Shown in pieces: positions 8,257 to 59,407 of a stretch of 64,000 nucleotides of DNA (position 1 is its first letter; each line of letters starts with the position of its first letter). Position numbers and translations under genes: made by a program. The notes under the pieces were generated by a model. That model saw only the letters and a list, made by a program, of their open reading frames with translations. It made no database searches and had not been told where the DNA came from. Where the stretch lies: positions 62,001 to 126,000 of the IMG/VR virus record IMGVR_UViG_3300050120_000361; one strand, given 5' to 3'.

Positions 8257-8259
8257 CTT

Positions 8260-8990: not shown

Positions 8991-9505
8991 CAGTCATTCC
9001 CTCCCTGAACCGTTAGGAACTGTCTGAGGTCCGCCTTTGAGTAGTTTATTGACTTGAGCGTTTTGTCGTCGCTTGCCCTGTAGACCAGGTACATGTTTGT
9101 TTTCGGGTCCTTTTTGTAGTAGGCCTCGCAGCGCTCTGGGTGGGCTTCGGAGCCGTAGTGGCCTATGGTTGCCTCGGCGGTTTCCACGTCCTGGCAGGCC
9201 TTTGACATGTTGGAGCGGTGCACCTCGGCGAATGCGCTCGAGAAAAGCTCCTGCATGCCGCACTCGAGAATGGTGCCGGACAGCACGTACTGCAGGTCGC
9301 AGAGCGCGTCGAGCACCCCAGCCTCGTCGCCGCCCCTCATTGCCGTGTCCAATTCCTTCAGCTCCTCGCCTATGAGCTTGACGCGCAGCGCGGCCCTCTT
9401 CTCGTTAGGTATTCCGGGCCTGTCGGCAACAGGGTGCTTGAATGTCTCGTGGAATTGGCCTACCATTGTCAATCCGCTCGGTTCTGTGTAAGATTTTACG
9501 TCCAT
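8990..9505 (-). CDS. MazG-like (PRA-PH/DR2231-type) nucleoside triphosphate pyrophosphohydrolase
   Basis: VGQFHETF, LRVKLIGEELKEL, DALCDLQYV, FAEVHRSNMSK, DDKTLKS. Confidence 0.88.
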   Translation of the reverse strand: MDVKSYTEPSGLTMVGQFHETFKHPVADRPGIPNEKRAALRVKLIGEELKELDTAMRGGDEAGVLDALCDLQYVLSGTILECGMQELFSSAFAEVHRSNMSKACQDVETAEATIGHYGSEAHPERCEAYYKKDPKTNMYLVYRASDDKTLKSINYSKADLRQFLTVQGGND

Positions 9506-9538: not shown

Positions 9539-10042
9539 TTATATCTGCGCCGGGTACCATTCGCCCTTGAGCATTACCTCCAGACGCGCCTCTGAAGGCT
9601 TGTTCCAAATGGTGACGTATCCGTTGTTCATTTCGTACCGTCTCTCCCTGCCGTTCAGTTCTGAGGTCACTATGTCCAATACTTCGAAGTAGGTTCCGCG
9701 CTCGTAGTTGAAAGCCCTGAACTTAAGGTCTACGGGCTGTTGCGGCCCCACTTCCCTGTATTCGAGGTTGAATATTATTGCCGGCACGTATTTGGCGTTG
9801 TTCGCGGAAACGACGTAGTAGCCGCCCGCGCTGTAGTTCTTCATTTTGAACTCGTTTTCTGACACATTCACTGTGCCGAAGTTCTTATCCTCGAACTCTA
9901 TGGCTATAACGGGCCGGTTTTCGTCGCGGCGCACGTTCGCTATCTTTAGCGCCCATACCCTGTTAAGGGACAAATAGCTGGGCATTTCAAGCCCGTTTGC
10001 GAACCAGGGCTTTGTGTATTTCGATGAGTCTCCCATAATCAT
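9539..10042 (-). CDS. Conserved phage-type hypothetical protein
   Basis: RVWALKI...GGYYVV...YVPAIIF...Y resembles a widespread small phage domain. Confidence 0.55.
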   Translation of the reverse strand: MIMGDSSKYTKPWFANGLEMPSYLSLNRVWALKIANVRRDENRPVIAIEFEDKNFGTVNVSENEFKMKNYSAGGYYVVSANNAKYVPAIIFNLEYREVGPQQPVDLKFRAFNYERGTYFEVLDIVTSELNGRERRYEMNNGYVTIWNKPSEARLEVMLKGEWYPAQI

Positions 10043-10584
10043 TCGGTTTCAATTGTTTCATAACCAAGGTTCTCTCCACGGAGTATCGCCCATCGTTTGT
10101 CCTCACGCAGGTACGGCCTCTCCACCACCCAGCAATCCATGAATTGTTCCATCAAATGGTCCGCATCCCGTAGTATAACCATTTCCTTGCGGCGCGGGTC
10201 GAGATAGTGCAGCACGTTACCAAGTTTGAGAATTCCCACCGCATGAAACATGGACGGTATCAGGCGCACGGTTAGGTGATATGGTACTATAGGGGTTTCG
10301 ACGAACAGTTCTCCTGGCGCCTCTTCCATCATCACCACGTTCCATATGTGCTCTTTTGGCAATGGTGGGTATGCAGGATTGGATTGAGTTACAAGTCCCA
10401 TTTTCAGTTCGGGAACGCTCATCAATAGCATAGCTTCCACGCGGGTCTCGTCACAGGCCTTGTAATTTGGGTCTTCGCACAGCCTCAACAGATTTTTATC
10501 CTTGAGAATGTTGGCCAACAAGTACACGGTGCACCAGCCTATGGAAGGCTGAACGTATGGTACTTCAAGTTTCAGATGCCTCAC
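10039..10584 (-). CDS. Putative papain-fold cysteine peptidase (C39-like/Josephin-like)
   Basis: LEVPYVQPSIGWC (Gln, then Cys at a helix start), FHAVGI (His), YLDP (Asp). Confidence 0.55.
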   Translation of the reverse strand: MRHLKLEVPYVQPSIGWCTVYLLANILKDKNLLRLCEDPNYKACDETRVEAMLLMSVPELKMGLVTQSNPAYPPLPKEHIWNVVMMEEAPGELFVETPIVPYHLTVRLIPSMFHAVGILKLGNVLHYLDPRRKEMVILRDADHLMEQFMDCWVVERPYLREDKRWAILRGENLGYETIETE

Positions 10585-21036: not shown

Positions 21037-21063
21037 TGTCTTCTTTTGTTATTTCCGTTATCG

Positions 21064-21145
21064 TACGCGGGATGGGACTCGAACCCACACACCTATTGGC
21101 ACCGCCCCCTCAAAGCGGCTCGTCTACCAGTTTCGACACCCGCGC
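21064..21145 (-). tRNA. tRNA-Leu(GAG)
   Basis: GCGCGGG/CCCGCGT acceptor stem, D-loop TGGTAGAC, anticodon arm CCGCT-TTGAGGG-GGCGG, long variable arm, GGTTCGAGTCC; CCA not encoded. Confidence 0.92.
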
Positions 21146-37347: not shown

Positions 37348-37361
37348 GTTATTTGCTTTTG

Positions 37362-37432
37362 TTGTCCCACAAGGATTCGAACCTCAACACTCTGAACCAA
37401 AATCAGATGTACTACCTTTATACGATGGGACA
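37362..37432 (-). tRNA. tRNA-Gln(TTG)
   Basis: TGTCCCA/TGGGACA acceptor stem, anticodon arm TCTGA-TTTTGGT-TCAGA, GGTTCGAATCC T-arm; CCA not encoded. Confidence 0.92.
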
Positions 37433-39178: not shown

Positions 39179-42148
39179 TCAATAAGCCGCGGCGTCCAAA
39201 TCGAATGAGAAGCTTGTGAACAGCGCCTCCTTTGTTATGGTGTAATCGCTCCAATTGCCGTTAGAGCCCGCGGTGAACTGCAGAACTATGTCGTATATGG
39301 TGTTCTCGTTTATGCGGTACTTCAGCGCGAAGTCGCTCGTCTGGAAAAGCACCGCCTTAGTGAATGAGTTCCTGACGGTCCATATCAGGTCCTTGGCGTT
39401 CGATATGAACAGGGGGTCGAAGCGGCACAGGAACACGTCCCCGAGAGAAAGCACCTGGTTTCCAGGCTGGTCTGACCCAACCCTGTACAGGCGCGGCCAT
39501 ATCGACTTTATCACTGGGAGCTTGTCCCATGTGTCGTCAGGGTCTATCGGCGGCCAATTAACAAAGTCCGGCTGAAGCGTGGATGGCCTGAAAAACAGCG
39601 GAAAGTCATAGTTGACCGGAAGCCTCGCCTTCTGCATGCCGCTGCCTTCCGGTATGTCGTATATGCTCTGCAGCGCGGACGCGTCATCAACCTCTTCGTT
39701 GAAGCCGTCCGGAACAAACACGAGGTCGAACAGCTCGCGCACGAGGTCTATGCCGGCCTCCACTGTTGTTATGAAAATCCACGGAGTTACCGTCTGAGGG
39801 GCCGACTGGTCTTCTACTATATCCATTGCCGTAATGAACAGCCTGTCTGGCGTGGACACGTATCCCGTAACGTCGAAATAGTTCTTCAGTGTCTTGAGAA
39901 GGGTGAGCTCATCGGTCTTGCGAAGCATTAGCGTGTGTCCGGACTGTGCCCTGACAGAGATGAGGTCAATCCAATTGTCCATGAAATCCGCCTGCATGTC
40001 AGTGGCCGCGTCCATGCCGAAATTCTTGTTTATGTCGGAAGGCTGGTACCGCCCATTCGAGAACAGGTACCTCAGCGCCAAACCGGCGGTTGGGTACTGG
40101 TAGTAGCCCACAAGGTCGTCGCCCGTTATGGACGGAACCGGCAGCACGTAATTCCCGTTGTGCGGAGAGGCTTCCCAAGGGCTGTCAACGTCAAGGTCTA
40201 TCGTACCGAGTATCGTATCATCGAGGGTGGCCACGGCATTGTCGGGGAGCGGCTCGTATGCCGGTTCCGGCTGAAAGTCGAACCAAGCCTGCAGGTACAG
40301 GTTGCCTGCCATGTTCCCGAAGCCGCTGAACGTGTCGTCGGCGGCCAATTGGAAACCGAGGCCGTCATTGGTCTCAAGGTTGCCGCCGTCATTCAGCACC
40401 AATTCGGTGCCATCGTCGTTTGAGTACTTGAGCGCCTGCGGGGTTGGGTTGTCGAAAGGCGCAATATCGAACACGGTTCCGTTAACCTTCAACCTGAAAG
40501 GGGTCTGCTGCACGCCAACGGCCACCAGCGTGTATGGCGCCTTTGAGGTTGGTGATGTCACTGCGCCTGTGTCCCCCTGCGATGCTATACTCCTTGAAAG
40601 GGCCACAACGCCAAGAGAGTCAACTATCTGCAGCACCCCGCTCGATGCCGGGTCGTCGTTGCCGCCTCCGACCTCTATCTCAAGGTTGAAAAAGCCCGGC
40701 AGCGTGTTAATGTCCTCGGAAACAGTTGAGCTGTCGAACGCCTCTATGGCAAGGCGCGTGTTAACGTCATTCACCACATACTCGAATGTCCACTCGTCCT
40801 TGTTGTTGTGCAGGTCCCAAACGGTCACCACCACGTCGTACGTTCCATTGGCGGCTGTAACGACTATTACTTCATCATGGCCTATAAGGCCGCCACCGTC
40901 GGGATTGTCGAATATAAAATTGTTGGCCGGAGCCAAAGCAATCATTGGATTTTCCCGATTGGTTATGGTGTAGTTCCAGTAGTACCCCAAAGGGCCCGCG
41001 AGCTCAAGGTGCAGAACTGAAGCGAACACGTCCTCAAGCAGTGTTGGGTCCAAATCAATGGTGAAATCCTCATCGGCGTAAAGCTGTCTCGGAACCGTGT
41101 ATATGTCGTCTATCAGGTCAGGAGAGTTTCCGTAGGTGCGGGCAGCGAACTTGTCAACATTGGTTTGTCGCTGTACGTTGTTCCAGGCCACCCATGTGTG
41201 CGGTCCGGCCAGGTAGTTCATTTCGAATATGTCTATCTTGACGTCCCCGCGCCAGCCGTATACCAGGTTCTCATACCATATGTGCGTTATCGCCACCGCG
41301 CTGAGGAACTGCGGGCCGTTTGCCGACGACACGACACCGAAGAAGTTTATCGACTGCTCCGGAAGCGTGAAGTACACGTTTGCCAGGCTCAGCGCATAGA
41401 ACAGCTTTTTGAAGAAATCCGTAAGGTCCGTTTCCGTTATGGTTCGCAACGGCATGTTCAGGTCCGTGTACGGATTGTTAGGGTCCGTCTCGTAGTTCTC
41501 GAACAGCAGGTGGTAGTTGCCGGTCTTCACGTCCGTTAGGGTGTTGGGCGTCAGGGTTATGCCACCAGAAGGCGTCTTCCACTCGTCTGTTACCACTATG
41601 GAGGCCGGGTCGAAGCCTATGAATTCAAGGAATTTCTCGATACCGCTCTTCTTCCCCTTGTCGCGCATCAGCGCCCTGAAGTCCAACAGCAACCTCCGGA
41701 GCATGTCGGCAGGGTTGCTGCCAATGTAGGCCGGCTCAAGCTCCTCGAAAGTTGGCAGCCTGTAGTTCACGAGAAGGTCGGCGTACTGGGCCTGCTGCGC
41801 GTCGAGCACGTTTTCTGGGCGGTAGGATATGCTTATCTGCCTCAGTATGTTGTCTATGCCGTAGTACTGTATGACGCAGTCGGACTCAATGTACAGCGTG
41901 TAGCTGCTGTTGTCGAGCCTTTGAAATATCTTAGACGGGACTATGTCGAACATTCCGTCAATGCCGCCGCCTGTTGGTGGGTCCTTGGGAGTGACTGAGT
42001 ACAGAAGGTTATTGGACTCAACGGACTCGAGTATGCACACCGAAAAAAGCTGCGTGGCCCTTATGAAGAAAGAGTTGCTTTTGGCCACCGCGTTAAGTGG
42101 GACTGGATTGGAGCCTATGTCCAATAGGATTACAGGAAATCTTTCCAT
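39179..42148 (-). CDS. Large virion structural protein (baseplate/hub-associated)
   Basis: 989 aa, acidic and beta-rich; KGKKSGIEKFLEFIG resembles baseplate-wedge motifs; coupled to the spike-like gene. Confidence 0.55.
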   Translation of the reverse strand: MERFPVILLDIGSNPVPLNAVAKSNSFFIRATQLFSVCILESVESNNLLYSVTPKDPPTGGGIDGMFDIVPSKIFQRLDNSSYTLYIESDCVIQYYGIDNILRQISISYRPENVLDAQQAQYADLLVNYRLPTFEELEPAYIGSNPADMLRRLLLDFRALMRDKGKKSGIEKFLEFIGFDPASIVVTDEWKTPSGGITLTPNTLTDVKTGNYHLLFENYETDPNNPYTDLNMPLRTITETDLTDFFKKLFYALSLANVYFTLPEQSINFFGVVSSANGPQFLSAVAITHIWYENLVYGWRGDVKIDIFEMNYLAGPHTWVAWNNVQRQTNVDKFAARTYGNSPDLIDDIYTVPRQLYADEDFTIDLDPTLLEDVFASVLHLELAGPLGYYWNYTITNRENPMIALAPANNFIFDNPDGGGLIGHDEVIVVTAANGTYDVVVTVWDLHNNKDEWTFEYVVNDVNTRLAIEAFDSSTVSEDINTLPGFFNLEIEVGGGNDDPASSGVLQIVDSLGVVALSRSIASQGDTGAVTSPTSKAPYTLVAVGVQQTPFRLKVNGTVFDIAPFDNPTPQALKYSNDDGTELVLNDGGNLETNDGLGFQLAADDTFSGFGNMAGNLYLQAWFDFQPEPAYEPLPDNAVATLDDTILGTIDLDVDSPWEASPHNGNYVLPVPSITGDDLVGYYQYPTAGLALRYLFSNGRYQPSDINKNFGMDAATDMQADFMDNWIDLISVRAQSGHTLMLRKTDELTLLKTLKNYFDVTGYVSTPDRLFITAMDIVEDQSAPQTVTPWIFITTVEAGIDLVRELFDLVFVPDGFNEEVDDASALQSIYDIPEGSGMQKARLPVNYDFPLFFRPSTLQPDFVNWPPIDPDDTWDKLPVIKSIWPRLYRVGSDQPGNQVLSLGDVFLCRFDPLFISNAKDLIWTVRNSFTKAVLFQTSDFALKYRINENTIYDIVLQFTAGSNGNWSDYTITKEALFTSFSFDLDAAAY

Positions 42149-42855
42149 TATTCTATGAATGTCTTGTTTGATTGGATTGTGTCAAGGTACTGCATGTCCT
42201 TCTGCTCCACCGGCGGGAACTGCGCGTTGTTTACCGGTATTGCCGCGGTGAGAGCGATGCGCAGCGAGGCGAGCATGGGCGCCGACGACGCGGTTTTTAC
42301 CACATTGAACATGGTGAACACCATCTGGCGCAGGGTGCTTATCTCAGTGAGAGCGTTCTTTAGGGCTGTTACATTGTCATCCCCGAGCACTGTAGCCTGA
42401 CCGTTGGTGCCGAGGTCTATGCGCTTATCGGTCATGTGTATCTGGTTGTCGGACACGTTCATACTCGCCTCGGTGTCCTGCACGTTCAGGTTTCCCTTTC
42501 CGTTAATGAAGTTTATGCCAAGTGAAGGCGTATAGCTCAGCTCGACGTTCCTATCATCAATGGTCCGCTTGAACAGCTCCACGTAGTTGAGGTAGTCGTC
42601 GTCTGACAGTCCGTTAGCTGGTGGGTCCACCTTGTTGAGGTACATGCCGGTGCTAAAGTTGCCGTTGAATATGAGAACCGGCACGCAGTCATTCTCCACC
42701 GGCAGGTACCGCACGCCCATGAACGGGAAATACCATGGAAGGTCATCCACAGCTATCTGCTCCGTATAGCCGGCAACCGTCGCCTTCACGCGGTACAGCT
42801 TCTGGTCGTCGTCCACCTTTACGATTTTGGCGAACATTATGGTAACGTTCTGCAT
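42148..42855 (-). CDS. Baseplate spike (gp5/gpV OB-fold-like)
   Basis: VDDDQKLYRVKA, DDLPWYFP, LPVENDCV.V.IFNGN, then beta repeats and ATVLGD. Confidence 0.75.
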   Translation of the reverse strand: MQNVTIMFAKIVKVDDDQKLYRVKATVAGYTEQIAVDDLPWYFPFMGVRYLPVENDCVPVLIFNGNFSTGMYLNKVDPPANGLSDDDYLNYVELFKRTIDDRNVELSYTPSLGINFINGKGNLNVQDTEASMNVSDNQIHMTDKRIDLGTNGQATVLGDDNVTALKNALTEISTLRQMVFTMFNVVKTASSAPMLASLRIALTAAIPVNNAQFPPVEQKDMQYLDTIQSNKTFIE

Positions 42856-44189
42856 TAGAAGCCCCTCCTCCTGTAGGCGTTGTACTCGCCGAGCTGCGGG
42901 TTCTTCTGCGCCGGGGCGTTCACCGCCGGCACGTAGGGGGTCCCGGCGGTGACGTCTGAGACCTGCTGCGGCGGAAGCAGTCCGGCTCCCTGAACGCTGT
43001 TGCCCAGGTTCAGAAGCGCATTGAAGTTCTTTGTTATGAGGCTTGCGAGACTGTCCTCCGCATTGAGCACGGTTGTGTCCACGTAGTTTATGCCGGCTGC
43101 GAACGCGTTCTGAACCATTGAGGAAGCGTTCGCAGCCGTGAAGCCGCTTATTATCTGGCCAAGAAACTGATTGCTCGATGTGAGCTTCTGCGCCTCGGAC
43201 CTGACAAGTCCTGGAAGCTGAACCGCCGCCGTCTTTGCCATCTTGCCAAGCGAGGAGGTCAACTGCTTGAAAAGCGAAGCGTCCGGCTGCTGGGCCTGCG
43301 TGCCGAGAGCAGCCACCCTGTTCTGTGCCGCCAGTGCCGCGAGGACGCTGCCGAAGTCGAAGTTGCCCATGCTGTTGTTGAACCTGCCGGTGTAGTTGCC
43401 GAAGCGGAAGTTCAGTGAAAGGTTCTGCATGAGCGGCGTTCCCTGCATCTCATTGGAAACGGTGCCGGCGAACTGGCTGCCGGTCTCAAGCGGGTTTATG
43501 TTTACGTCTCCGAACTTGTATATGACGTGGTTGAACTGCGCCATGGTGCCGTTCTGCGAGAACTGCTGGTCAGACAGCTTGCGCAGGGTAGGGAAAACCA
43601 CCTGCTGTATCTTGTCTATTGGTATGTTGTTGGGGTCCACCGAATTGTCAGGGTCCTGGTCGTAGAGGTCCATGCGGTAGTAGTTAGAGTTGAACACCAG
43701 CACGCTCATGTCGAACCTGCGCAAATTGGCCGGAAGCACCTCAACCTGCCTCGTGTCGTCATGCCATATCTGCCTGTAAGTCGCCATGAGGCCGGTGAAA
43801 AGCATGTCGGATGTCTCACGTATCTGAAACACCAGCTTCTCGCTCTCGTTGAAGTTGTCCTGCGGCGCCCAGTTCTCCACAATGGAAAGCCCGTCAACCT
43901 GCATTACAAGGAAGTCGTAATCAGACCAGAACTGCTGCCAAACGGAAATCCACTGCTTAAGCATCGTGTACCTCGCACTGTCGCCAATCCTCCTTAGGTA
44001 TGCGAGCGCGCTGTCCGTGTATGACTCATCAGCCAACAAACCGTAGGTCTTGTCGTAGTTCATGAGCACCTTGAATGACAGAGACAGCGGGTCGTGGTAA
44101 GTCTTCATGGTGAGAGCGCGCATCTCACCGGTAATGAACTCGGTATAGTTACCCAATTGGTAGTACTGGTTTGTAGGGCTGCTGCTCAT
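42855..44189 (-). CDS. Tail/baseplate structural protein
   Basis: 444 aa, coupled to the spike gene; VLPANLRRFDMSV motif, N/Q-rich. Confidence 0.55.
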   Translation of the reverse strand: MSSSPTNQYYQLGNYTEFITGEMRALTMKTYHDPLSLSFKVLMNYDKTYGLLADESYTDSALAYLRRIGDSARYTMLKQWISVWQQFWSDYDFLVMQVDGLSIVENWAPQDNFNESEKLVFQIRETSDMLFTGLMATYRQIWHDDTRQVEVLPANLRRFDMSVLVFNSNYYRMDLYDQDPDNSVDPNNIPIDKIQQVVFPTLRKLSDQQFSQNGTMAQFNHVIYKFGDVNINPLETGSQFAGTVSNEMQGTPLMQNLSLNFRFGNYTGRFNNSMGNFDFGSVLAALAAQNRVAALGTQAQQPDASLFKQLTSSLGKMAKTAAVQLPGLVRSEAQKLTSSNQFLGQIISGFTAANASSMVQNAFAAGINYVDTTVLNAEDSLASLITKNFNALLNLGNSVQGAGLLPPQQVSDVTAGTPYVPAVNAPAQKNPQLGEYNAYRRRGF

Positions 44190-44418
44190 TTTCCTGTTTG
44201 GATTTTATTTGGTTTTTGGGGTCCTTTTTGTTATGTTATTTATGGTATGCTTATTTCGCTGAAAATTCTTTTTCGTCCCGTCGGGCCGTGTTGTACCGGC
44301 CGCCGCGCCAGGACAGGCCCGCCCTTTATCGGCGAAGGGTAACGGGAAAAACCAACTATAACGCGAATGATACATATTATTCGGTGACTTTACACCAAAA
44401 ACACATAACGAAGCGAAG
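44190..44418. promoter_or_regulatory. Divergent intergenic region at the strand switch
   Basis: All genes to the left are minus and all to the right are plus; GC-rich core flanked by T-rich and A-rich leaders; contains GCCGATAAAGGG (minus, 44322-44333). Confidence 0.6.
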
Positions 44419-45369
44419 ATGAATTTACCTGAAATAGGCCCGCTGCTAACCAACCAATCCACTTACATAACCGCCACCGGCGCACTGCTCGATTTGGACA
44501 AGGCCAACCAGAACAGCACCCCCTTCTTTTTCTCGAGGATGGTGGCCATGCAGCTGCCGCAGTACGCGGTGCCCAATTTCTTTTTGGACCTTACGAGCCA
44601 GGGCGTGATTTCCACGAGCCCAAACACCATACTGCCGAAGGGCATTCAGTACTACACGGAGAACATATCAAGGAACTTCCTTTCCTCTTACTCCAAACGC
44701 GGAACAGAGCTTGCTTTCTGGAAGCTCCTGAACAAGTGCGGCATGTCCTACGCCGACATCCAGGCCTCCATCAAATTCGTAAACAAGGTGGCCACTTCGA
44801 ACTTCATAACCATTGAGAACAACGGCGGCTGGGGCGAAATCGTCGGCGTAATACCGAACCAGTGCAGCATACTCACCACCGCCTGGGCTAACAACCCCAA
44901 CGTTCCGGACATAGTGACTTCGGACCCGCAGAACGACAGCGACGGCCTGTTCGACACCGGCGATAAGGAGTTCACCTTCACCGATCCCCTTTCAAAGCAG
45001 ACACTGGACTTCGACAACTGCACGTTCGACACCGACACCCCGAACGAGTCTTTCGACTTCAACCTACTGCTGTTCTTCTACCAGGACGCGGACGGAATAG
45101 ACAAGCTGCACGGCGTGAACTTCATAGCCCCGTACGTTAACATGGTTTCCTACTGGCAGCTCCCGATCTCGACACAGTTCAACAACCAGGCTACATCGGT
45201 TGGGTACCAGTACAAACTGAATTTGAAGACCTGCAACAATGCGGCTTCTTTGGTGCTTGTCCAGGACTACAACGGCGACGGCTCGCAGTGGAACCTGTAC
45301 TTCGAGAGCCTATCAAACTTCAACAGCTTCCTTGAGCTGCAGAAGCGCGGCAACACGCCAGTGGGCTAA
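44419..45369 (+). CDS. Virion structural protein (hypothetical)
   Basis: 316 aa, N/D/F-rich; FDFNLLLFFY...LHGVNF. Confidence 0.6.
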   Translation: MNLPEIGPLLTNQSTYITATGALLDLDKANQNSTPFFFSRMVAMQLPQYAVPNFFLDLTSQGVISTSPNTILPKGIQYYTENISRNFLSSYSKRGTELAFWKLLNKCGMSYADIQASIKFVNKVATSNFITIENNGGWGEIVGVIPNQCSILTTAWANNPNVPDIVTSDPQNDSDGLFDTGDKEFTFTDPLSKQTLDFDNCTFDTDTPNESFDFNLLLFFYQDADGIDKLHGVNFIAPYVNMVSYWQLPISTQFNNQATSVGYQYKLNLKTCNNAASLVLVQDYNGDGSQWNLYFESLSNFNSFLELQKRGNTPVG

Positions 45370-45442
45370 TACAGATACGATACCCAAAACGGCGGACCAA
45401 TAAAAGGGCGGCCGCCGGTACGAAACTAACGAAAAGCGAAAC

Positions 45443-45739
45443 ATGGCATTGGACAGGAAAGTTCCGGTTACACTGGTCTGGGTTGATACGATGCCCGACT
45501 ACAATACAATGGAGGATGGCGTGGTGTACATATCGGAAAAGTACCACACCTCCACACACAGGTGCCTTTGCGGGTGCGGGTCTAAGACGGTGCTTCCAAT
45601 AAACGAGCGCCCCGGAAGGGATTTCGGTTGGGACCTGGCAAAGCACCCGAACGGTAAGGTCTCTTTCACACCATCCATAGGAAACTACCCATGCAAAGCG
45701 CACTACCACATAACAGAAAATGTCGGCGTATTCGTGTGA
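45443..45739 (+). CDS. DUF6527-like protein
   Basis: EDGVVYIS...HRCLCGCG...W.L...VSFTPSIGN..CKAHYHIT...V. Confidence 0.75.
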   Translation: MALDRKVPVTLVWVDTMPDYNTMEDGVVYISEKYHTSTHRCLCGCGSKTVLPINERPGRDFGWDLAKHPNGKVSFTPSIGNYPCKAHYHITENVGVFV

Positions 45740-46012
45740 GTATATAGTGTGAGAAAATAGAGCCCGTACGTTATCCCAAAGAAGTTAAATCAGGTCAGGA
45801 TTGGTAGAAACACTAACTATAGGTTAATTTTGTAACACAGAGTAAATATCGTTAATTAACGGCTAATTATCCAAGCAATCCTCGATAAAAATAAGGAAAA
45901 AGCGTGAAAAACTGCAGAAAAACACCCTACGTTTATACTATAAAGCGAAATGAAACAGAATTTTCGCCCTTGAATTTAGGTGATATATAACCGATAAGGC
46001 CCAGAAAATCAG
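45740..46012. promoter_or_regulatory. AT-rich non-coding region (promoter or origin candidate)
   Basis: Longest and most AT-rich gap; perfect palindrome CGTTAATTAACG (45850-45861); GATATATAA-CCGATAA just upstream of the next gene. Confidence 0.45.
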
Positions 46013-46408
46013 ATGTCATCACAGCCGTACATAGATATAAACCTGGCAGGTACCGGCATATCGGACAATGTCATAACCAACGACCTGCAGCTTTTCTTCC
46101 AGGAGGTCCAGCTCGCCCTGTCGGTGGGTCCGGACGGCTCATGGGGTTCCAGGGACTCGATAGACATCACGAAGTACCTTTTCAACCAGTACGTGACTGT
46201 CAATCAGATACAGAACGAGATTGACTCGTTCATTACCGCATACTGCAGCCAGGCCGGCACCTTCCAGCACAGCATAGACGTGAGCATACTGAAGGTGAAC
46301 AGCCAAGACCTAATCTACATCGTGATGACCGTCTACCCTGCCGGCGCCAACAGGTCTTTCGTACAGAAGTATCTGCTTGGGTCTGATGCGATAACCGAGC
46401 TACAATAA
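46013..46408 (+). CDS. Baseplate wedge protein, gp25-like
   Basis: LQLFFQEVQLAL...GSWG...IDITKYLF...IQNEIDSFI; size and position before the gp6-like gene. Confidence 0.6.
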   Translation: MSSQPYIDINLAGTGISDNVITNDLQLFFQEVQLALSVGPDGSWGSRDSIDITKYLFNQYVTVNQIQNEIDSFITAYCSQAGTFQHSIDVSILKVNSQDLIYIVMTVYPAGANRSFVQKYLLGSDAITELQ

Positions 46409-46421
46409 AAATAATAAGGAA

Positions 46422-47966
46422 ATGTCGAACCAGCCATCAACAGGTAACACTCTAACCAAAATATTCCAGAAGTTCATTCCGGACAATATAGCGCGAAGCC
46501 AGACATCCGTGTTCTGGCAGCTATTCTCGGGCTTTGACGCGATGGCGCAGCAGTTCGAAACCATACTCAAGACATTCAAGAAGGAGCGCAACATGCTCAC
46601 AGCGAACCACGTGACTTCGCTCCGCTCGCTGGCCGCCGGCAACGGTTTCGAGCCAACCCTAAAGACGCCAGCCACGGGAATGGCGTCAATTCAGGCCAGT
46701 TCCGCGCTTTTCAACCGGGTAGGCTTTCCGCTGTACCTGCCGCCATACGCCCAGTTCACAGAAACCAACTCAGGGCTGGCATTCTACTACGACTCCAGCA
46801 AAGTGCTTCGCATAGACAACAGCGCGGCGCTGCTAACCCTCACAGAGGGCGAGCCGCAGCAGCAGACACAGGTGTCCACGGGAAGGTACATCGAAAGGTA
46901 CTACCTGAGCAGCGACGCCGTCGCTGATGGAAGCATAATGGTCAGCGTGGGTTCGGTTCAGTACCTGAACGTCAAGTCATTCTTCGACTCGGCCAACCTG
47001 AACGGTGGGCTGCTGTTCATGGTAAAGTTCAGCAACAGGGCGGACATGCCTATAGTCGTTTACGTCATGGGCGCTCAGCTGAACGACACGGTCACTATAG
47101 CCTGGAAGTCAACCGCCGGCGAGGGGGGCAACCTCCCGGCCGACGCGTCTTTCACCACCACGGACATGATTACCGCCCAGGGGCTCGAGGTGAACCCTTC
47201 CTCGACGGAGGCCATAATATCCGTGGTGTCCGGCTTCCGACTCGGCAGCAACGGCACCGATGAGAACGCTCTGCGGGCGGCAATCGGTTTCAATCACGGT
47301 GTGGTGCTTCTTTTCGATACCGTGTCCTACACGGCATTCATAGACAAGTTCAGCACCCTGCTAACGCAGAAGGTCGTGCCCAACCAGTCCTCCAAGCAGA
47401 TAAGCAACATATACGTCTCGCTCAAGACTTACCTCAATCCGAACCTTTCGCTCTCGCTTCAGCAGCAGTACCAGGACATAATCGGCACGGGTTCGTGGCT
47501 CGTGCCTTCGGACCAGAAGACGATACTTGACGGGCTCATTTCAGCGAATGAGTACGCGCTCAGCTCGCACAACCTTTTCGACTCTGAGACCAACAGCTAC
47601 GCGCTTCAGGTCCTGTTCGACACCAGCCTAGACCAGCAGGCGAACCAGCAGGCGCTGCTTAACACGATATACGAGGCTTTCAGCCAATTCCTATGGAACT
47701 CCTCGTGGACCGTCAACCTCGAGCTCCTTTTCGACGGTTTCATGACCGACAACAACGTAACTTTCGCCTGGACCGTATTCTCACAGTCGGACGAGGCCGC
47801 CAAGCTCTCAACAAAGGCGGTGGGCCAGCCCACGTCCCACGTCCTGACCAATATCGGCGGAATTACACCGGTACTTCACGGCAACTTCCCGATAGCAGAC
47901 CAGAACATGAACCCAGTGCAGCTGTTCTTCGACGTGAACATAGTCTCACAGGAGTCCCTCGGGTAA
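46422..47966 (+). CDS. Baseplate wedge protein, gp6/BplJ-like
   Basis: ERNMLTA...SLRSLAAGNGFEP, STAGEGGN, GSNGTDENALR. Confidence 0.7.
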   Translation: MSNQPSTGNTLTKIFQKFIPDNIARSQTSVFWQLFSGFDAMAQQFETILKTFKKERNMLTANHVTSLRSLAAGNGFEPTLKTPATGMASIQASSALFNRVGFPLYLPPYAQFTETNSGLAFYYDSSKVLRIDNSAALLTLTEGEPQQQTQVSTGRYIERYYLSSDAVADGSIMVSVGSVQYLNVKSFFDSANLNGGLLFMVKFSNRADMPIVVYVMGAQLNDTVTIAWKSTAGEGGNLPADASFTTTDMITAQGLEVNPSSTEAIISVVSGFRLGSNGTDENALRAAIGFNHGVVLLFDTVSYTAFIDKFSTLLTQKVVPNQSSKQISNIYVSLKTYLNPNLSLSLQQQYQDIIGTGSWLVPSDQKTILDGLISANEYALSSHNLFDSETNSYALQVLFDTSLDQQANQQALLNTIYEAFSQFLWNSSWTVNLELLFDGFMTDNNVTFAWTVFSQSDEAAKLSTKAVGQPTSHVLTNIGGITPVLHGNFPIADQNMNPVQLFFDVNIVSQESLG

Positions 47967-52603: not shown

Positions 52604-55600
52604 ATGACGCTCAGAACCAAGCACAGAAGTGACGAAGTAGGCCAGGTAGACGAAAGGCTCGCCATAAGCGTACAGCTTGGAATACCCACCTATACTGCCG
52701 ACCCAACTCCGTCTCCAACGGACGCCGAGGGCGGCTACGCCAACACCCCAATCTACTGGAACACCGCTCTCGGCTCGCTTCGCCTGAACCCGGGAGGGCT
52801 GGGCTGGCAGTCACTGGGCGCCGTTTCGCCCGGGTCGGGCATAGACATAACCTCGGGGATAGCCTCATTGGGCGCCCCGGTCACAAGGGACACGGACCTT
52901 GACGGCGTGCACAAGACGCGCATCGGGGACATCACCGGCGGCAAGTCCTACGTGTCCATAGACCCGGCGAATTCTCAGGCAGTGCTGCAGTCGCTTTCGG
53001 GCGGAGTTTCAGCGTTTTCAGGCGCGTACGGCGGAAACGCCCAGATGGGCGTTTCGCAGCCAGGGGCCCACTCCTACGTTTACGTGGACCCGTCCCAAAT
53101 GGTGGTATCGGACACGATAAACAGCAGGGGCCTGATAAACGGAGGCGACTATGAGGCGAACTTTGTCGCGAGGTCGCTCGTTACATACCAGTGGGCCAGC
53201 GCTCAGAACGCCCTTTACATGCCAAAGACCGGCGGCACGTTCACTGGCGACGTTCAGATAACAACCCCGCCTGTCAACGGGACCTCGGCGATAAACAAGA
53301 ACTACGCCGACAGCATAGCCATGGGCGTCGTGTGGATAGGCGCCGACACCGACTCCGGAAGCAACGTGACGCTCTCTGGCGAGCAGGTGCTTTCCGGGTA
53401 CCTTACGTCCAACTCGCGCGCGTTCCTTCACGGGCAGACCAACGCCGCCAATAACGGCGTTTGGCTGACGAGCGGAGGCGCGTGGACGAGAACATCCGAC
53501 GCCTCGACGCCTTCCCAGCTCGTGAGGTGCGCGGTCATAATAGACGCGGGTAACAATGCGGGTCAGACCTGGTTAAACACCAATTCCTCAATAGTTCTTG
53601 GCACCACGGCCATAACGTTCACGCGCGCGGGCGGGCTTAACTACATCAACGGCACGGGCATAGCGATAGCCGCTTCGACAATATCTCTTGACCTCACGTA
53701 TACTGACGCGAGATACGCATTGAACTCTTGGGGCATTCAGTCCTTCACAACATCAGGCAGCAGCGGCACGCCTACGTTCTCGGGCGGCACATTGAATGTG
53801 CCAGCCTATACCCTCACAGGTCTCGGCGGACAGGCCGCACTGGTTTCGGGAACCAACATAAAGAACATAAACTCCGCGTCACTGCTCGGCGGAGGTAACA
53901 TTGCGCTGCAGACGCCATTGGTTGCGGGAACGGACTATTTGACACCCACGGGGTCCGCTGCTGGATTGGTTTCATTCCCGACATTCAACCAGAACACAAC
54001 CGGCAACTCTGCCACCTCTACAAAGCTTGCGACAGGCCGCAGCATACAGGGAGTGCTTTTCGACGGAACGTCGGACATTAGCATCCTGAACGGTACCGGC
54101 CTTGTGCGCATGGCCGGCACCTCCATATCCTACGACAATTCAACATACATTACCTCGGCAGGCGCTGACGGCCTTTACCTGCCACTGCACGGGACCGCGG
54201 ACAACTCCGCGCTGTGGAACGGCCTGGCGTACTACGGCGGCGGCCTCGTTGCATCGGTGCTCTACGCGATGGCCTACGACGGGACCAATAACAGGCAGGG
54301 GCCCGCTAACGCCGCGCAGATGCAGGGATGGCTCGGGCTCGGCTCCGCGGCGTACCTGAACGCATCTGCCTCCGCCGCCGCCAACGCGGTTGTGCAGCGG
54401 GACGGCTCGGGATACATAAACAACACATACATACTCACCACTGACGACTCTTCTTCCGCACTGGGGTACATGGTTGGCAAGTCTCCATCGGACAACTACC
54501 ACAGGACGTACGCGGTCGGCACGGTTCAGTCATGGCTGGGCCTTGGCGCGAGGGCGTACGACTCCGCGGCATACCTTCCGCTTCACGCCGAAGCAGACAA
54601 CTCGGCCCTGTGGAACGGCAACAGCTACACCCCTGTGTCTTACAGCGGGGCCCTCCAATACATTCTCGGATACGACCAGTCGGCTTCCACTTGGAAACCC
54701 TCCACTGCGGCCTCCATTTCCTATTTCCTTGGGCTCGGGTCCAACGCCTTCGACTCCGCCGCGTACCTTCCGCTGCACTCGACGGCTGATGCGGCTACGC
54801 TTTGGGGCGGGCAGCAGGCAAACCTTTCAACGACGGTGTCATCGATAGCCAATATGGTGGCCCAGCAGCCAGGCGGCTCTGTTGCGGTGGCCTCATTGGG
54901 TCAGGTCCAGGGATGGCTGGGACTCGGCTCTAACGCCTACAATTCGACAGCCTACCTGCCGCTTCACGCAAAGGCAGACAGTTCGGCAACCGCCGACATG
55001 GGGTACGCGATGGCTGTACAGGACTTTGACAGGCCGATGTCCGTTGTTACCCCCAACTTCAACGGCGGCCACCAGATGCGTTTGGACTTTGTGAACTCTG
55101 CCGTGATAGGCGGTGCAACCGGCAACTTCGGCGGCGTGGTCACGCTCATTCCCTACGACGGTAACACCGCATCGACCGGCGACGCGTCATACCAGCTCGG
55201 TTTCGTGGGGACCGGGGCAAACGGCTCAGGAACGCCGCGCATGGTCATCCGCAAGGGGATAGACGCGACATGGAACGGGTGGCATGAAATGCTCACGGAC
55301 TCCAACTACAGCTCGTACTCCCCTACACTCACAGGCGGCGGAGCATCTGGCGTTTGGGGTATTAGCGTGACTGGAAACGCGGCAACCGCGAACTCAGCCA
55401 CAACGGCGGGCAGCGCCGGGAACTCCACGCTCTGGAACGGGTACGACAACCAGTTCGCGAGCGGCGTGAGGTCGGACATAGCGCCATCATCTATTAACGG
55501 CTTCTACTCCAACGGGCACGTGTACCAGTTCGCGGCGAACCAGGTGCAGTCATTCCTCGGGCTCGGAACCGCGGCCTACCTCAACGCTACTACTGCCGGA

Positions 55601-58600
55601 AATTCGGGGGCCGGGGCTAACCAGGTTGTCAGGTACGATGGCAGCGGATACATTCAGGCCTACTACATAAATTCGGACTCTCCATCCAGTGAGGGCGGGC
55701 CCATAGGGCAGTTCGTGACCACCAACGGCTCAGACAACTACTACAGACGCCAGAGCTTATCGGCGGTGGCCTCGACAATAGCCACAGCGATAGGCCTTGG
55801 AGGATACCTGCCTCTTTCCGGCGGTACCCTGACTGGGGCCCTGAGCGGCACCACTGCAAATTTCAACGCCAATGTGAACATAATACAGCAGGGAAGCGAC
55901 ACCATAGGCGTAGGCTCGTACATGCAGATTGGGCGCTCGGACTCGGGAATAAGCGCCGGAGTTGTCACGCAACTGAGCTCAGCATACAACATGGATTGGT
56001 GGACCCTGGCCAACGGAGGCGGCTGGACGCGTAGGATGACGCTTGCCAACAACGGCTCAGGGCTGTCGCTCACGGCCGGCTCATACAACGGCGTGCCCTT
56101 TCAGGCGAATGACATAACTGGAGTGCAGAACGCGCCTTTCTGGGCGGGCTCACTGGCAAATCCGGGAAGCGGCCAGCAGACTTTCATGCCTGTAATAGGC
56201 CAATACTCCGTTGTCTCGGGAGTCGGAGGCGCGCACTACATGTCCATTGGCACATGGCGCTCAGGAAATTCTGGATATACCGGGGCCGTTTACATAGCGC
56301 CTGGCGGTGGTTCGGACTCCTATTCAACGGATTACTTCCTGCTCTCGCACGGTGGCGCTATAACGCACAGCTCTGGAACCACCTTCCTGAATTCAGTCAA
56401 TTATGGCACGTGGGCTCTTCCGCTCTCGGCTGGTGCTTCATACCCTTTGACGAACACCCTTTACCTTTCAACAACCGAGGGCGCGCGCACCGTTTCGGAT
56501 GCAGGATACCTGTCATTCTACAATTCTGCTGACTCCTCAAGGACAGGGTACATTCAATTCAACGCCGGCAGCGGCGTGTACATAGCTGCAGAGAACGCCA
56601 CAAGCATAAACCTGCAGGGCGCCCCGGTGGCGATTAACAACACATTGACTGTAACGGTCAACGGCGCAGTGAACCCGCTCCACGTGGTCAACAACATATC
56701 ATCTGGATACACGGGCACCATGCTGTGGGGTCAGGTCGCGCAGGCCACTGGAACCGCTTTCGACCTCATAGGGCTCTACACCTCGACGAACACGCAGAGG
56801 CAGTTCAGCGTTAGCGGCGCGGGCCAGATGAGGCTTGACGGCGCGATGTACGGTACAAGCGCATACCACCAGCTAAACAGGAACGCCCTGACCACTGAGA
56901 ACATGTTCGTCTGGCGCACTGCAGGTACAGAGAAGTGGTATTTCGGCCAGCGCAACAAGAACTCTGAGGATGGGCTGTCGCTTTACAACACGGCGTACGG
57001 CGACGACAACATGTACTTCCACCCGAACGGGACTGTTGACTTTTCCGGCAATCTGAACTTTTCTACCTGGAACGGGCTGACCTACGCGGCCACGAGCTCG
57101 CCGAACAATATAGTGCAGTACAACGGTAGCGGCTACATATTCGCGAACTATTTCAACACGCCATCGGGTGGCGGGGAGCGAAACGCCAGCGGGCTCGGAT
57201 ACGTGGCCGGCTTCAACAGCTCGGACACCTATATCAGGTCCTACAACTCCTCCGCGGTAGCTGGAATGTTGGGGCTGGGCACCGCGGCATACAGCGACAA
57301 GACGCAGCTCTGGTCGGTGTCGCACCCGACCGCCTACTACATCTCGAACACCTGGGACGGAACCTACTGGCAGCTGACGTCCAACCACCCGGCAGCGGTG
57401 AACGTGGGGCACGCGACGAACGCAGACCACGCCACGTCTGCCGCGTACGCGGCCTACCTCCCGACCAACTACATCGGAGGGGTGCAGACGAACCCGCAGA
57501 CCTACTTCGGGAACGGGGCCGGCCTGCAGGTGGCGATGACGGGTTCGGTCGCCACATGGTCCGACACCCTCTGGATAAACGGGTACGCCGGAGGGGACGT
57601 GCCGAACATGGTGGCCATGCACTTCCTCAGGAACGGCACGCCGCGCGCGTTCCTTAGCACGCAGCAGAGCACCGCAACGGCATACGGGTCTTACTACGAG
57701 TTCCTTACAGAATACAACTGGAACAACTACGCGCCATCGCTGACCGGCGCAGGGGCGTCCGGCTCCTGGGGCATCAACATTACCGGTTCTTCGATATATT
57801 CAGGTTCTTCTGGCTACTCACAATATGTTGATTTATTGGCGGGTAGAACTGACGCAGCTTCTTATCCCGTACTGTGGGGCGTATCGCAGGGCACAAATCC
57901 GCACACGGGAAATCCAGGCACTTTCGCCTTCTCCTGCGCCGCGGTTACGATAAACTCGAGCACGGGAACCCTAAGCGCCACCAACCTCAGCGCCTCAAAC
58001 TCAATAGGCGTGGCCGGCAGCCCTGGCTCGACACTCGGCTACTACGCCAACGGGCAGCTCTTCGGTGGGTGGGAGGTGTTGGCGGGCTACTACATCGACC
58101 CGTCTAACGGCGCCTACAGGGCCCCAAACGGCGCGGCTCTGGCCGGGTACTATTTCCAAACATACAATGGCGCGGCCACGCAGCTATACGTGGGCCTTAC
58201 CGGAACCTACGCCGGCAGGGTCGGGATAGGCACAACCACGCCGGGGTACAACCTGGACGCCGGTACGGGAAATATAGGGGCCGGCGGCTTCTACTCATCG
58301 GCTTCCCAGTCGTCCATATGGGGTTACGGCTCGAGCGGCACGGGCTCGGGATACAGCACCTCTGACTGGGGCGTTTGGTCCGCGAGGTCCGGCGGCCCGA
58401 CGCTCGGCTTCCACTACCAGGGGGTCGTGGCCTCCACCATAGGCATAGAGGCCAGCGGGCGCATAGCCATCAGGAACAATCCCGGAACGGGTTACGAAAA
58501 CTTCATAGCCAATAATATACAGGCTGCATCAGCTTTGCAAGCAGATAGGGTTTTCGCGGGTTATGACAGCGGTGTGAGCGGCTCTGTTAGCGCTTCCGGC

Positions 58601-59407
58601 TGGTTCAGGTGCTCCGGCCCGACCGGGCTGTACAACGCCTCGTACGCCGTGGGGATTTACGCCGGGGACGCCTCCACAATGCACCTGTACGGCTCGAGCG
58701 GCTCGTCTTTCGGATTGAAGATGTCCTACAACGGGGAAAGCTCCACCACTGGGTACCTTTACGGGGACTCCTCTGGTTTCGGACTGCTCACCACTTCTGG
58801 CGGATGGGGACTCAGGATGACTGGAGGCGGGGACGTTCAGGCAATGTCCTCGGTATCCGCGCCTGTGGTGTACTCAACCTCGGACGGCTTCCACAGCCAA
58901 TCGGTTAAGGGCATTGCCGGAAACTACGTGGCGCAGGGGAACACGCAAATGATTATATGGACAATTGGGGACAGTTGGAACACTCTCGCCAACATGTACG
59001 GCCTCACCTACACGTACGGCGCTACCTTCTCTGACCATGAAATCTCAATAGCAGAGGCTGGGACAGTGAACATATCATTCGCCATGGGAGGCAGGGGGTG
59101 GTTCCGCAACGACGTCACAGCATCGGCCTTCTACCAGTCGTCCTCCCGCTCGCTGAAGACCGCCATAAGGGATACCCGAATAAACGCATTGGACCTGGTG
59201 CGAGGGCTCCGCGTCAGGGACTACGTGTACAGGGAGCGCCCTTCGGAGAGGCGCGTGGGCGTGATAGCCGAGGAGGCGCCCAGGGAGTTCCTCAGCCAGG
59301 CGGGCGACTCGGTCAACCTCCAGGACTCTCTGATGATAGCCCTGAAGGCCATACAGGAATTGAACGCTAAAGTGGAGGACCTTCAATGCCGACTTGGGCA
59401 GGCCTGA
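52604..59407 (+). CDS. Long tail fibre (2267 aa) with C-terminal peptidase S74 intramolecular chaperone
   Basis: G/S/A/T/N-rich; GQTNAANNGVW...AWTR, LVSGTNIKNIN, YLPLSGGTLTG, GRVGIGTTTP, SGWFR..G.TG.YN; C-terminal SSRSLKTAI...GVIAEE...LKAIQEL coiled coil. Confidence 0.9.
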   Translation: MTLRTKHRSDEVGQVDERLAISVQLGIPTYTADPTPSPTDAEGGYANTPIYWNTALGSLRLNPGGLGWQSLGAVSPGSGIDITSGIASLGAPVTRDTDLDGVHKTRIGDITGGKSYVSIDPANSQAVLQSLSGGVSAFSGAYGGNAQMGVSQPGAHSYVYVDPSQMVVSDTINSRGLINGGDYEANFVARSLVTYQWASAQNALYMPKTGGTFTGDVQITTPPVNGTSAINKNYADSIAMGVVWIGADTDSGSNVTLSGEQVLSGYLTSNSRAFLHGQTNAANNGVWLTSGGAWTRTSDASTPSQLVRCAVIIDAGNNAGQTWLNTNSSIVLGTTAITFTRAGGLNYINGTGIAIAASTISLDLTYTDARYALNSWGIQSFTTSGSSGTPTFSGGTLNVPAYTLTGLGGQAALVSGTNIKNINSASLLGGGNIALQTPLVAGTDYLTPTGSAAGLVSFPTFNQNTTGNSATSTKLATGRSIQGVLFDGTSDISILNGTGLVRMAGTSISYDNSTYITSAGADGLYLPLHGTADNSALWNGLAYYGGGLVASVLYAMAYDGTNNRQGPANAAQMQGWLGLGSAAYLNASASAAANAVVQRDGSGYINNTYILTTDDSSSALGYMVGKSPSDNYHRTYAVGTVQSWLGLGARAYDSAAYLPLHAEADNSALWNGNSYTPVSYSGALQYILGYDQSASTWKPSTAASISYFLGLGSNAFDSAAYLPLHSTADAATLWGGQQANLSTTVSSIANMVAQQPGGSVAVASLGQVQGWLGLGSNAYNSTAYLPLHAKADSSATADMGYAMAVQDFDRPMSVVTPNFNGGHQMRLDFVNSAVIGGATGNFGGVVTLIPYDGNTASTGDASYQLGFVGTGANGSGTPRMVIRKGIDATWNGWHEMLTDSNYSSYSPTLTGGGASGVWGISVTGNAATANSATTAGSAGNSTLWNGYDNQFASGVRSDIAPSSINGFYSNGHVYQFAANQVQSFLGLGTAAYLNATTAGNSGAGANQVVRYDGSGYIQAYYINSDSPSSEGGPIGQFVTTNGSDNYYRRQSLSAVASTIATAIGLGGYLPLSGGTLTGALSGTTANFNANVNIIQQGSDTIGVGSYMQIGRSDSGISAGVVTQLSSAYNMDWWTLANGGGWTRRMTLANNGSGLSLTAGSYNGVPFQANDITGVQNAPFWAGSLANPGSGQQTFMPVIGQYSVVSGVGGAHYMSIGTWRSGNSGYTGAVYIAPGGGSDSYSTDYFLLSHGGAITHSSGTTFLNSVNYGTWALPLSAGASYPLTNTLYLSTTEGARTVSDAGYLSFYNSADSSRTGYIQFNAGSGVYIAAENATSINLQGAPVAINNTLTVTVNGAVNPLHVVNNISSGYTGTMLWGQVAQATGTAFDLIGLYTSTNTQRQFSVSGAGQMRLDGAMYGTSAYHQLNRNALTTENMFVWRTAGTEKWYFGQRNKNSEDGLSLYNTAYGDDNMYFHPNGTVDFSGNLNFSTWNGLTYAATSSPNNIVQYNGSGYIFANYFNTPSGGGERNASGLGYVAGFNSSDTYIRSYNSSAVAGMLGLGTAAYSDKTQLWSVSHPTAYYISNTWDGTYWQLTSNHPAAVNVGHATNADHATSAAYAAYLPTNYIGGVQTNPQTYFGNGAGLQVAMTGSVATWSDTLWINGYAGGDVPNMVAMHFLRNGTPRAFLSTQQSTATAYGSYYEFLTEYNWNNYAPSLTGAGASGSWGINITGSSIYSGSSGYSQYVDLLAGRTDAASYPVLWGVSQGTNPHTGNPGTFAFSCAAVTINSSTGTLSATNLSASNSIGVAGSPGSTLGYYANGQLFGGWEVLAGYYIDPSNGAYRAPNGAALAGYYFQTYNGAATQLYVGLTGTYAGRVGIGTTTPGYNLDAGTGNIGAGGFYSSASQSSIWGYGSSGTGSGYSTSDWGVWSARSGGPTLGFHYQGVVASTIGIEASGRIAIRNNPGTGYENFIANNIQAASALQADRVFAGYDSGVSGSVSASGWFRCSGPTGLYNASYAVGIYAGDASTMHLYGSSGSSFGLKMSYNGESSTTGYLYGDSSGFGLLTTSGGWGLRMTGGGDVQAMSSVSAPVVYSTSDGFHSQSVKGIAGNYVAQGNTQMIIWTIGDSWNTLANMYGLTYTYGATFSDHEISIAEAGTVNISFAMGGRGWFRNDVTASAFYQSSSRSLKTAIRDTRINALDLVRGLRVRDYVYRERPSERRVGVIAEEAPREFLSQAGDSVNLQDSLMIALKAIQELNAKVEDLQCRLGQA
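54170..57300 (+). repeat. Degenerate protein-level repeats within the tail fibre
   Basis: LGLGxxA(Y/F) six times, YLPLHxxAD four times, V(Q/R)x(D/N)GSGYI...SD(N/T)YxR three times. Confidence 0.8.

Follow-up and report, generated by a model that had tools for sequence, protein, structure and literature searches.

A stand-alone gene of the BubE (DUF6527) family inserted among the baseplate genes of a 208-kb peat phage

Why should a phage carry, in the middle of its baseplate genes, a single component of a bacterial ubiquitination-like pathway and none of its partners? The window analyzed here is a stretch of 64,000 nucleotides, bases 62001-126000 of the IMG/VR virus record IMGVR_UViG_3300050120_000361. 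This record is a 100%-complete genome of 208,538 bp, with direct terminal repeats and 52.9% GC, that is found in peat metagenome runs. An original prediction, made from the sequence alone, identified an orphan DUF6527-like gene at 45443-45739 of the window, carrying the full signature of the family and flanked by non-coding gaps inside a structural module, and proposed that it was a captured component used as a decoy or deconjugase protecting tail assembly, perhaps together with a peptidase at 10039. We were interested in establishing whether the gene belongs to this family, whether it is truly an orphan and an insertion, and what it may do for the phage. The observation is confirmed in every part, while the interpretation is only partly supported by our results.

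Membership of the BubE family

The ORF at 45443-45739 on the + strand starts with ATG and codes for 98 aa. It carries the motif H39-R-C41-L-C43-G-C45-G46 (nt 45557-45580), the motif P77-S78-I-G-N81 (nt 45671-45685, with the S78 codon at 45674-45676) and the motif C84-K-A-H87-Y88 (nt 45692-45706). Pfam confirmation had been set beforehand as a test of the prediction, and the protein matches PF20137 (DUF6527, now BubE) at E 6.4e-13, with 48.8 bits against a gathering cut-off of 23.6 and residues 36-93 on profile positions 2-58 of 63, which is far beyond chance; a scan of the whole genome gave this single PF20137 hit, at 49.2 bits. PHROGs has no family for the protein. A longer antisense ORF, 45320-45709 (129 aa), is spurious, as its GC3 is 0.48 and its codon index is 2.6 sd below the genome mean.

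Two 2024 preprints from one group renamed the 6E/DUF6527 operons Bub. In these studies the DUF6527 protein of Citrobacter sp. RHBSTW-00271, BubE, is described as a new serine protease with a C4 zinc site (C57/C59/C61/C99) and a Ser-His dyad (S92/H102), which cleaves BubA-GFP slowly in vitro, requiring 48 h even with the cognate enzyme, and removes conjugates of the ubiquitin-like protein (Ubl) BubA from its targets in cells (Ye, Gong, Chambers, Corbett; 10.1101/2024.11.21.623953). It also carries an N- or C-terminal extension rich in hydrophobic residues, said to be conserved across BubE proteins. The authors could not find a phage that any Bub operon stops, and a 2026 paper repeats that no protection has been demonstrated. 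In the papers searched, which did not include the published 2026 version of the Bub paper, we found no report of phage-encoded BubE.

We aligned 90 sequences, including phage-type proteins and the Type I and Type II operon BubEs that we recovered. The invariant columns are C41, C43, W63, S78 and H87, whereas C45, C84, H39, G44, P52, P77 and Y88 are at least 90% conserved. S78 and H87 are the only invariant Ser and His and are the predicted catalytic residues, corresponding to S92 and H102 of Citrobacter BubE. C41, C43, C45 and C84, which are conserved in both of the alignments we made, are the four predicted zinc ligands, the first three of them in the zinc knuckle. The correspondence with the Citrobacter protein is drawn from its published motif and from the identical C-x-x-H spacing of C99/H102 and C84/H87.

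An AlphaFold2 model built on this alignment has pLDDT 92 and pTM 0.82 and is all-beta, with nine strands, in agreement with the compact beta-sandwich of the family. The model superposes on the ESM-Atlas BubE cluster representative (TM 0.80, rmsd 1.9 A over 87 residues) and on an 89-aa phage protein in BFVD (TM 0.81). No solved structure resembles it, the best Foldseek match to the PDB having E 0.6 and the best wide VIA search Z 3.8, as the preprint also found for BubE.

An orphan gene in a conserved baseplate block

In Bacteroidota the Pfam models identify two kinds of Bub operon, Type II with Multi_ubiq (93-244 aa), DUF6791-ThiF (391 aa) and BubE, and Type I with Prok-E2_E, JAB-ThiF (457-487 aa) and BubE, each in this gene order, in accordance with the literature and with the original statement that the family normally occurs with Ubl and ThiF-type E1 genes. 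The same models returned no ThiF (PF00899), Prok-E2_E (PF14462), DUF6791 (PF20590), Multi_ubiq (PF14452) or Prok-JAB (PF14464) hit in the 208,538-bp phage genome, although the negative DUF6791 scan is weak by itself, since its control genomes gave no signal either. Furthermore, jackhmmer profiles seeded from the Bacteroidota Bub proteins found E1s in every operon locus but gave no hit in the phage genome, and no phage Ubl was found with Multi_ubiq or Lambda_tail_I. The orphan status of the gene, predicted for the window, therefore holds for the complete genome.

The baseplate context is also supported. The gene at 42148-42855 on the - strand, in the divergent arm, resembles a baseplate hub or spike gene, as it matches phrog_37871 (baseplate protein, E 2.3e-9) and phrog_430, with a weak hit to Phage_base_V, the gpV OB domain. 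Downstream of the DUF6527 gene, 46013-46408 (+) resembles gp25/W, a baseplate wedge gene (sheath initiator), with ESM-Atlas features of 0.91-0.92 (GP46, Sheath_initiator, GPW_gp25) and structural TM of 0.62-0.75 to baseplate clusters, and 46422-47966 (+) resembles gp6/J, also of the baseplate wedge, with features of 0.94-0.97 (Gp6-like_1st, Baseplate_J) and TM of about 0.5. Upstream, 44419-45369 (+) codes for a 316-aa protein, presumably of the baseplate, that is a core gene of this jumbo-phage group, with 56 homologues at 32-74% identity on contigs up to 196 kb. A nucleotide search with 12 kb around the DUF6527 gene against 50,697 phage records found no match, so the phage has no close cultured relative.

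Using the 316-aa gene as a marker, we found the order marker, W-like gene, J-like gene in every relative examined, and we compared the slot between the first two. In the locus L144, whose marker protein is 74% identical to that of the window, the slot holds a different DUF6527 protein of 107 aa, and in a 196.5-kb JGI contig (64%) it holds a 99-aa PF20137 gene. In L145 (58%), L147 (52%), L146 (51%) and L143 (50%) the slot is empty and the flanking genes abut; in L146 the gene syntenic with 42148-42855 also hits Phage_base_V. Of 13 further IMG/VR loci, 11 of them distinct, with marker identities of 36-53%, none has a DUF6527 gene in the slot, and the genes abut in all except L155, which has a gap of about 490 nt. 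In total, 15 distinct related phages lack the gene, with flanking genes 2-12 nt apart or overlapping in all but one, and only the two nearest relatives of the window also carry a DUF6527 gene there. These results show that the gene is a true insertion, an accessory gene confined to the sub-lineage of the window.

The L144 protein (L144:5128-5451, P0080) is a real PF20137 match (E 7e-11), but is only about 22% identical to the window protein; its Trp, Ser and His still align, while it lacks the N-terminal strands and has a CPAC knuckle and an acidic C-terminal tail. A word search with this subtype found only itself.

In the window the gene is separated from the 316-aa gene by 73 nt (45370-45442) and from the W-like gene by 273 nt (45740-46012) with only 34% GC. 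The second gap is probably an insertion scar, a restart promoter region for the baseplate genes, or both. However, Rfam finds nothing in 44100-46500, scans for sigma-70 promoters and terminators are not above shuffled sequences, and short repeats flanking the insert are weak. Recent capture is not supported, since the gene has GC 0.519, GC3 0.636 and a codon index of 0.674 against a genome mean of 0.693 (sd 0.088), and since it belongs to an old phage-specific clade rather than nesting among host operon copies.

A clade of short BubEs in phages and prophages

Relatives of the window protein are widespread. A word search found 22 of 92-134 aa at 41-66% identity, including metagenome contigs, a pattern scan of IMG/VR found 53 loci, and tblastn of the 50,697 phage records found three, in Dulem virus 40, Burkholderia phage FLC9 and Erwinia phage pEa_SNUABM_29. 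A scan of species-representative genomes found 23 loci, where most of the short copies are in Bacteroidota or Balneolota and two are identical to IMG/VR proviruses, in Rufibacter and Mucilaginibacter. [quoted passage not shown]

In a maximum-likelihood tree of 115 rows, Type I BubEs form one clade and 17 Type II-type rows, 14 of them with an adjacent E1, form another (both SH-aLRT 95), and 85 phage, prophage and metagenome rows, the window protein included, form a clade with no operon member (SH-aLRT 90), next to the Type II operon clade. The size of this clade is thus at least 85, with proteins of about 89-108 aa where the gene start is clear. The three cultured-phage proteins are unresolved just outside it, but holding all 88 tail-less rows as one clade gives a better likelihood and is not rejected (p-AU 0.858). 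The window protein is only 35-41% identical to Bacteroidota Type II operon BubEs.

Every one of the 74 phage-type sequences whose motifs could be parsed, like the window protein, ends exactly 11 residues after the catalytic His, whereas operon BubEs continue for 16-80 residues (median 58), with a lysine-rich tail that ends in hydrophobic residues. The window protein is a member of the BubE family by sequence, residues and predicted fold, but departs from canonical BubE in its lack of both the operon context and the hydrophobic extension.

Orphan status is also general among the relatives. ThiF is absent from 48 of 50 viral records and from all 14 that are at least 90% complete, the two exceptions being a contig that carries a whole Type II BubA-BubBD-BubE operon (L046) and a record with an unrelated ThiF plus Prok-E2_D pair 23 kb from its BubE. 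Across 67 loci BubE is the only shared family, the next most common neighbour cluster being in 8. Among 150 de-duplicated nearest neighbours (±1/±2) from 57 other loci, PHROG and Pfam searches found no ThiF, Multi_ubiq or DUF6791, but integrases (4), holins (3), terminases (2), portals (2) and Baseplate_J (2), together with methylases and others. These tallies show no enrichment, so that a family-wide link to tail or baseplate modules, as implied by the proposed protection of tail assembly, is not supported.

Possible roles of the phage protein

The explanation that we favour, with about even confidence, is that the gene codes for a catalytically competent, minimal BubE, a predicted zinc-stabilised beta-sandwich Ser78-His87 peptidase used as counter-defence. 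In this view the protein would recognise a host BubA beta-grasp domain and hydrolyse the bond at the BubA C-terminus, whether an isopeptide link to a target lysine or a peptide link in a fusion, both shown for Citrobacter BubE; action on the oxyester intermediates on E1/E2 is speculation. Its purpose would be to erase the BubA tagging that a presumed host Bub pathway, most likely of Type II, imposes during infection, and the loss of the hydrophobic tail, which may restrain or localise the host's own BubE, would free it from whatever does so in the host enzyme. As the gene was inserted into the baseplate operon, it is probably made late, together with baseplate proteins, which are plausible targets by analogy with Bil tagging of a tail protein. 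What our analysis establishes is the family membership, the conserved catalytic and zinc residues, the family fold (by modelling), the orphan status, the insertion as an accessory gene and the membership of a large tail-less phage and prophage clade whose nearest sequence relatives are the Type II operon BubEs; the peptidase activity, the BubA substrate, metal binding, the timing of expression and the counter-defence role are inferred.

The window gene has the features expected of a phage anti-defence gene, being small, patchy among close relatives, without a conserved partner and homologous to the off-switch of a host pathway. A co-fold of the protein with a heterologous, non-cognate Bacteroidota BubA and Zn scored ipSAE 0.45 against a best control of 0.23, with at least 98% agreement in contacts between runs and a partner pLDDT of at least 85. 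This provides only weak support and is counted as a small increment, since the mark was reached by 58 of 80 solved complexes and 2 of 110 mismatched pairs, but at 0.60 or under by only 7 of those 80 and by both mismatches that passed. Against this explanation, no Bub operon has been shown to protect against any phage, cognate BubE is very slow in vitro, and the conservation of Ser and His shows constraint but not which substrate is cut. In a search of sequencing runs the locus was found in no RNA run, but only in three peat-metagenome DNA runs, two of which may be the source sample. Of the points proposed originally, deconjugase and candidate counter-defence are the best reading, while the suggested partner peptidase is not supported, since the ORF at 10039-10584 has no Pfam or PHROG match and lies 35 kb away in the replication module.

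The main alternative, which we consider unlikely, is a role internal to the phage, in which the enzyme would process a phage or host protein needed for baseplate or tail morphogenesis, for instance by removing a beta-grasp-like or other C-terminal segment, unrelated to host Bub immunity. The location inside the baseplate block and the presence of another DUF6527 subtype in the same slot of a related phage agree with this idea, as do two unrelated phages, one (L140) where the gene lies between the tape-measure gene and a Baseplate_J-like gene with overlapping start and stop codons, and one (L002) where it lies just upstream of tail genes. Furthermore, a Ubl-plus-peptidase pair, gpI and gpK of lambda, has been noted in tail assembly. 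However, 15 distinct related jumbo phages build the same baseplate block without the gene, its neighbours elsewhere are diverse, with Baseplate_J in only 2 of 57 loci, no partner is conserved, and the genome has no Lambda_tail_I or Multi_ubiq domain. Neither is there support for a structural component such as a PAAR-like spike tip, given the absence of a significant PDB match and of a fixed position in tail modules.

Somewhat less likely is a host-modulating accessory gene, or moron, that would tune a host Bub stress-response pathway, for example by dampening it during lysogeny or induction, or would serve as the missing peptidase of a host operon. Many copies are in proviruses next to integrase or lysis genes, which are typical moron positions, and Bub operons are regulated by DNA-damage sensors and may be stress pathways. 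Nevertheless, the window phage and several others are complete genomes with direct terminal repeats, and no integrase lies in the part of the window phage that was examined. The three lysogen genomes checked carry only short DUF6527 frames (94-127 aa), and it is from these frames alone that the absence of a Bub operon in them is inferred.

A non-catalytic decoy or sponge that sequesters BubA or the E2-E1 enzyme is disfavoured, in spite of the small size of the protein, the slow turnover of BubE and the weak docking result, because S78 and H87 are invariant in all 90 aligned sequences, alongside the zinc ligands, and a pure binder would be free to lose them. The least likely possibility is a functionless, hitch-hiking remnant of a Bub operon, which L046 shows can be carried by mobile elements, since the frame is intact with codon usage matching the genome, the clade is large with conserved length and residues, and a DUF6527 gene is retained in the slot in relatives whose flanking gene has diverged to 64-74% identity.

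A bolder reading, which is not excluded but which we regard as tentative and less likely than not, is that tail-less BubEs are a dedicated and widespread phage weapon against Bub tagging, which would be the first, indirect evidence that Bub pathways are antiviral. The insertion into baseplate operons, with different DUF6527 subtypes in the same slot of one jumbo-phage lineage, would then mark baseplate proteins as the tagged targets and show an ongoing arms race. As the discoverers of Bub operons found no phage that these operons stop, the biological role of the pathway is open, and a large, phage-specific clade of its own deconjugase, freed of its partners and of its tail, is what one expects if phages need to undo BubA tagging. 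This makes the question accessible to experiment, since cultured phages with a homologue exist (pEa_SNUABM_29 and FLC9). The minimal proteins of 90-100 aa may also solve a practical problem, as the authors of the preprint could not determine any BubE structure and their truncated BubE was insoluble.

Other systems offer partial parallels. The JAB/JAMM peptidases of bacterial Ubl-type immune systems, Cap3 of Type II CBASS and BilC of Bil, are deconjugases that reverse Ubl-like conjugation and so switch the pathway off, the activity that a phage could exploit, but they are metalloproteases of unrelated fold and chemistry and are encoded by the host operon. Viral deubiquitinases and deISGylases of eukaryotic viruses, such as coronavirus PLpro and nairovirus OTU, strip an antiviral ubiquitin-like tag, which is the functional analogy proposed here, but they are experimentally established cysteine proteases of unrelated folds. 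Phage enzymes that destroy an immune intermediate, such as Acb1 and Tad-type proteins, are likewise small, patchily distributed accessory genes that neutralise a host pathway, but they act on nucleotide signals, not on protein conjugates, and have no sequence relationship with BubE; in one locus, L003, a Tad2-like gene lies 4 kb from a BubE homologue.

Diversity of DUF6527 proteins in phage and prophage loci

In a related jumbo phage, whose flanking gene is 74% identical to that of the window, the same slot holds a very different DUF6527 protein of 107 aa (L144:5128-5451, on the NCBI MAG contig of GCA_030151225.1). This protein has a CPAC knuckle at residue 8, no N-terminal strands and an acidic C-terminal tail, it is only about 22% identical to that of the window, and it is a singleton in the word search, which means either allele replacement or very fast divergence.

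Variation was also observed among the tail-less BubEs. One IMG/VR provirus (L017) carries two diverged tail-less BubE paralogues 4 kb apart, at 3686-3982 and 7989-8273 of that locus, one of which has G-S in place of P-S before the catalytic serine. Furthermore, a subclade of tail-less BubEs, made of proteins P0009 and P0014 and of the genes at L029:8001-8363, L058:483-845 and L059:8001-8363, has an insertion of about 20 aa between the catalytic Ser and His. This subclade lacks the usual fourth Cys, and a Cys inside the insertion, absent in P0014, may replace it.

Conjugation and putative anti-defence genes in other BubE-bearing records

A phage record with a tail-less BubE (the same viral record as L031) also encodes, at L081:1108-2608 and 23 kb from its BubE, an adjacent pair of ThiF (261 aa) and Prok-E2_D (245 aa) genes next to an HNH endonuclease, that is, an E1-E2 of another family carried by a phage. 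A full Type II Bub operon, composed of BubA of 157 aa, BubBD of 395 aa and a tailed BubE of 179 aa, was found at L046:1740-3812 on a 20.5-kb IMG/VR contig that is 41% complete. Either Bub rides on a mobile element or prophage, or the contig is misclassified. When the C-termini of the 17 Type II-type BubA proteins recovered were inspected (L120-L130 and other BubA genes, for example L122:6499-6780; from Bacteroidota, Balneolota, two Sphingomonadales and the L046/L080 viral contig, which is listed twice), all of them were found to end in Ser, 13 of them in ...T(D/N)KS, and not in the C-terminal Gly described for Citrobacter BubA. At L003:14544-14987, a Tad2-like gene (PF11195, anti-Thoeris family) lies about 4 kb downstream of a BubE homologue, in a run of small unknown ORFs that looks like an accessory or anti-defence region.

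Sequences surrounding BubE and other features of the window

The 316-aa gene upstream of BubE, at 44419-45369 of the window, is a strongly conserved core gene of a group of large phages from environmental metagenomes, with 38 invariant residues in 25 sequences, and it has no Pfam or PHROG family. On the opposite side (45734-46012), the 273-nt gap after BubE has 34% GC and begins with a tandem GTGTGAG(T/A)A(T/A)ATA pair (45734-45759), and a weak 12-nt inverted repeat brackets the insert (45399-45410 and 45965-45976). No Rfam hit was obtained for this gap, and in L144 there is no such gap. The antisense ORF at 45320-45709 (-), of 129 aa, is longer than the real BubE gene and was chosen over BubE by our length-greedy ORF selection, and other length-based callers could do the same.

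Elsewhere in the window, the replication block encodes a MazG-like nucleotide pyrophosphohydrolase at 8990-9505 (-) (phrog_671, E 1.5e-30), a family sometimes linked to counter-defence, and tRNA-Leu(GAG) and tRNA-Gln(TTG) genes lie within the replication module, at 21063-21145 and 37361-37432 (-), respectively. Downstream of the baseplate genes, at 52604-59407 and from 62888 onward, lie giant ORFs of 2267 aa, with a tail-protein-like C-terminus, and of 3040 aa, the latter running beyond the window.
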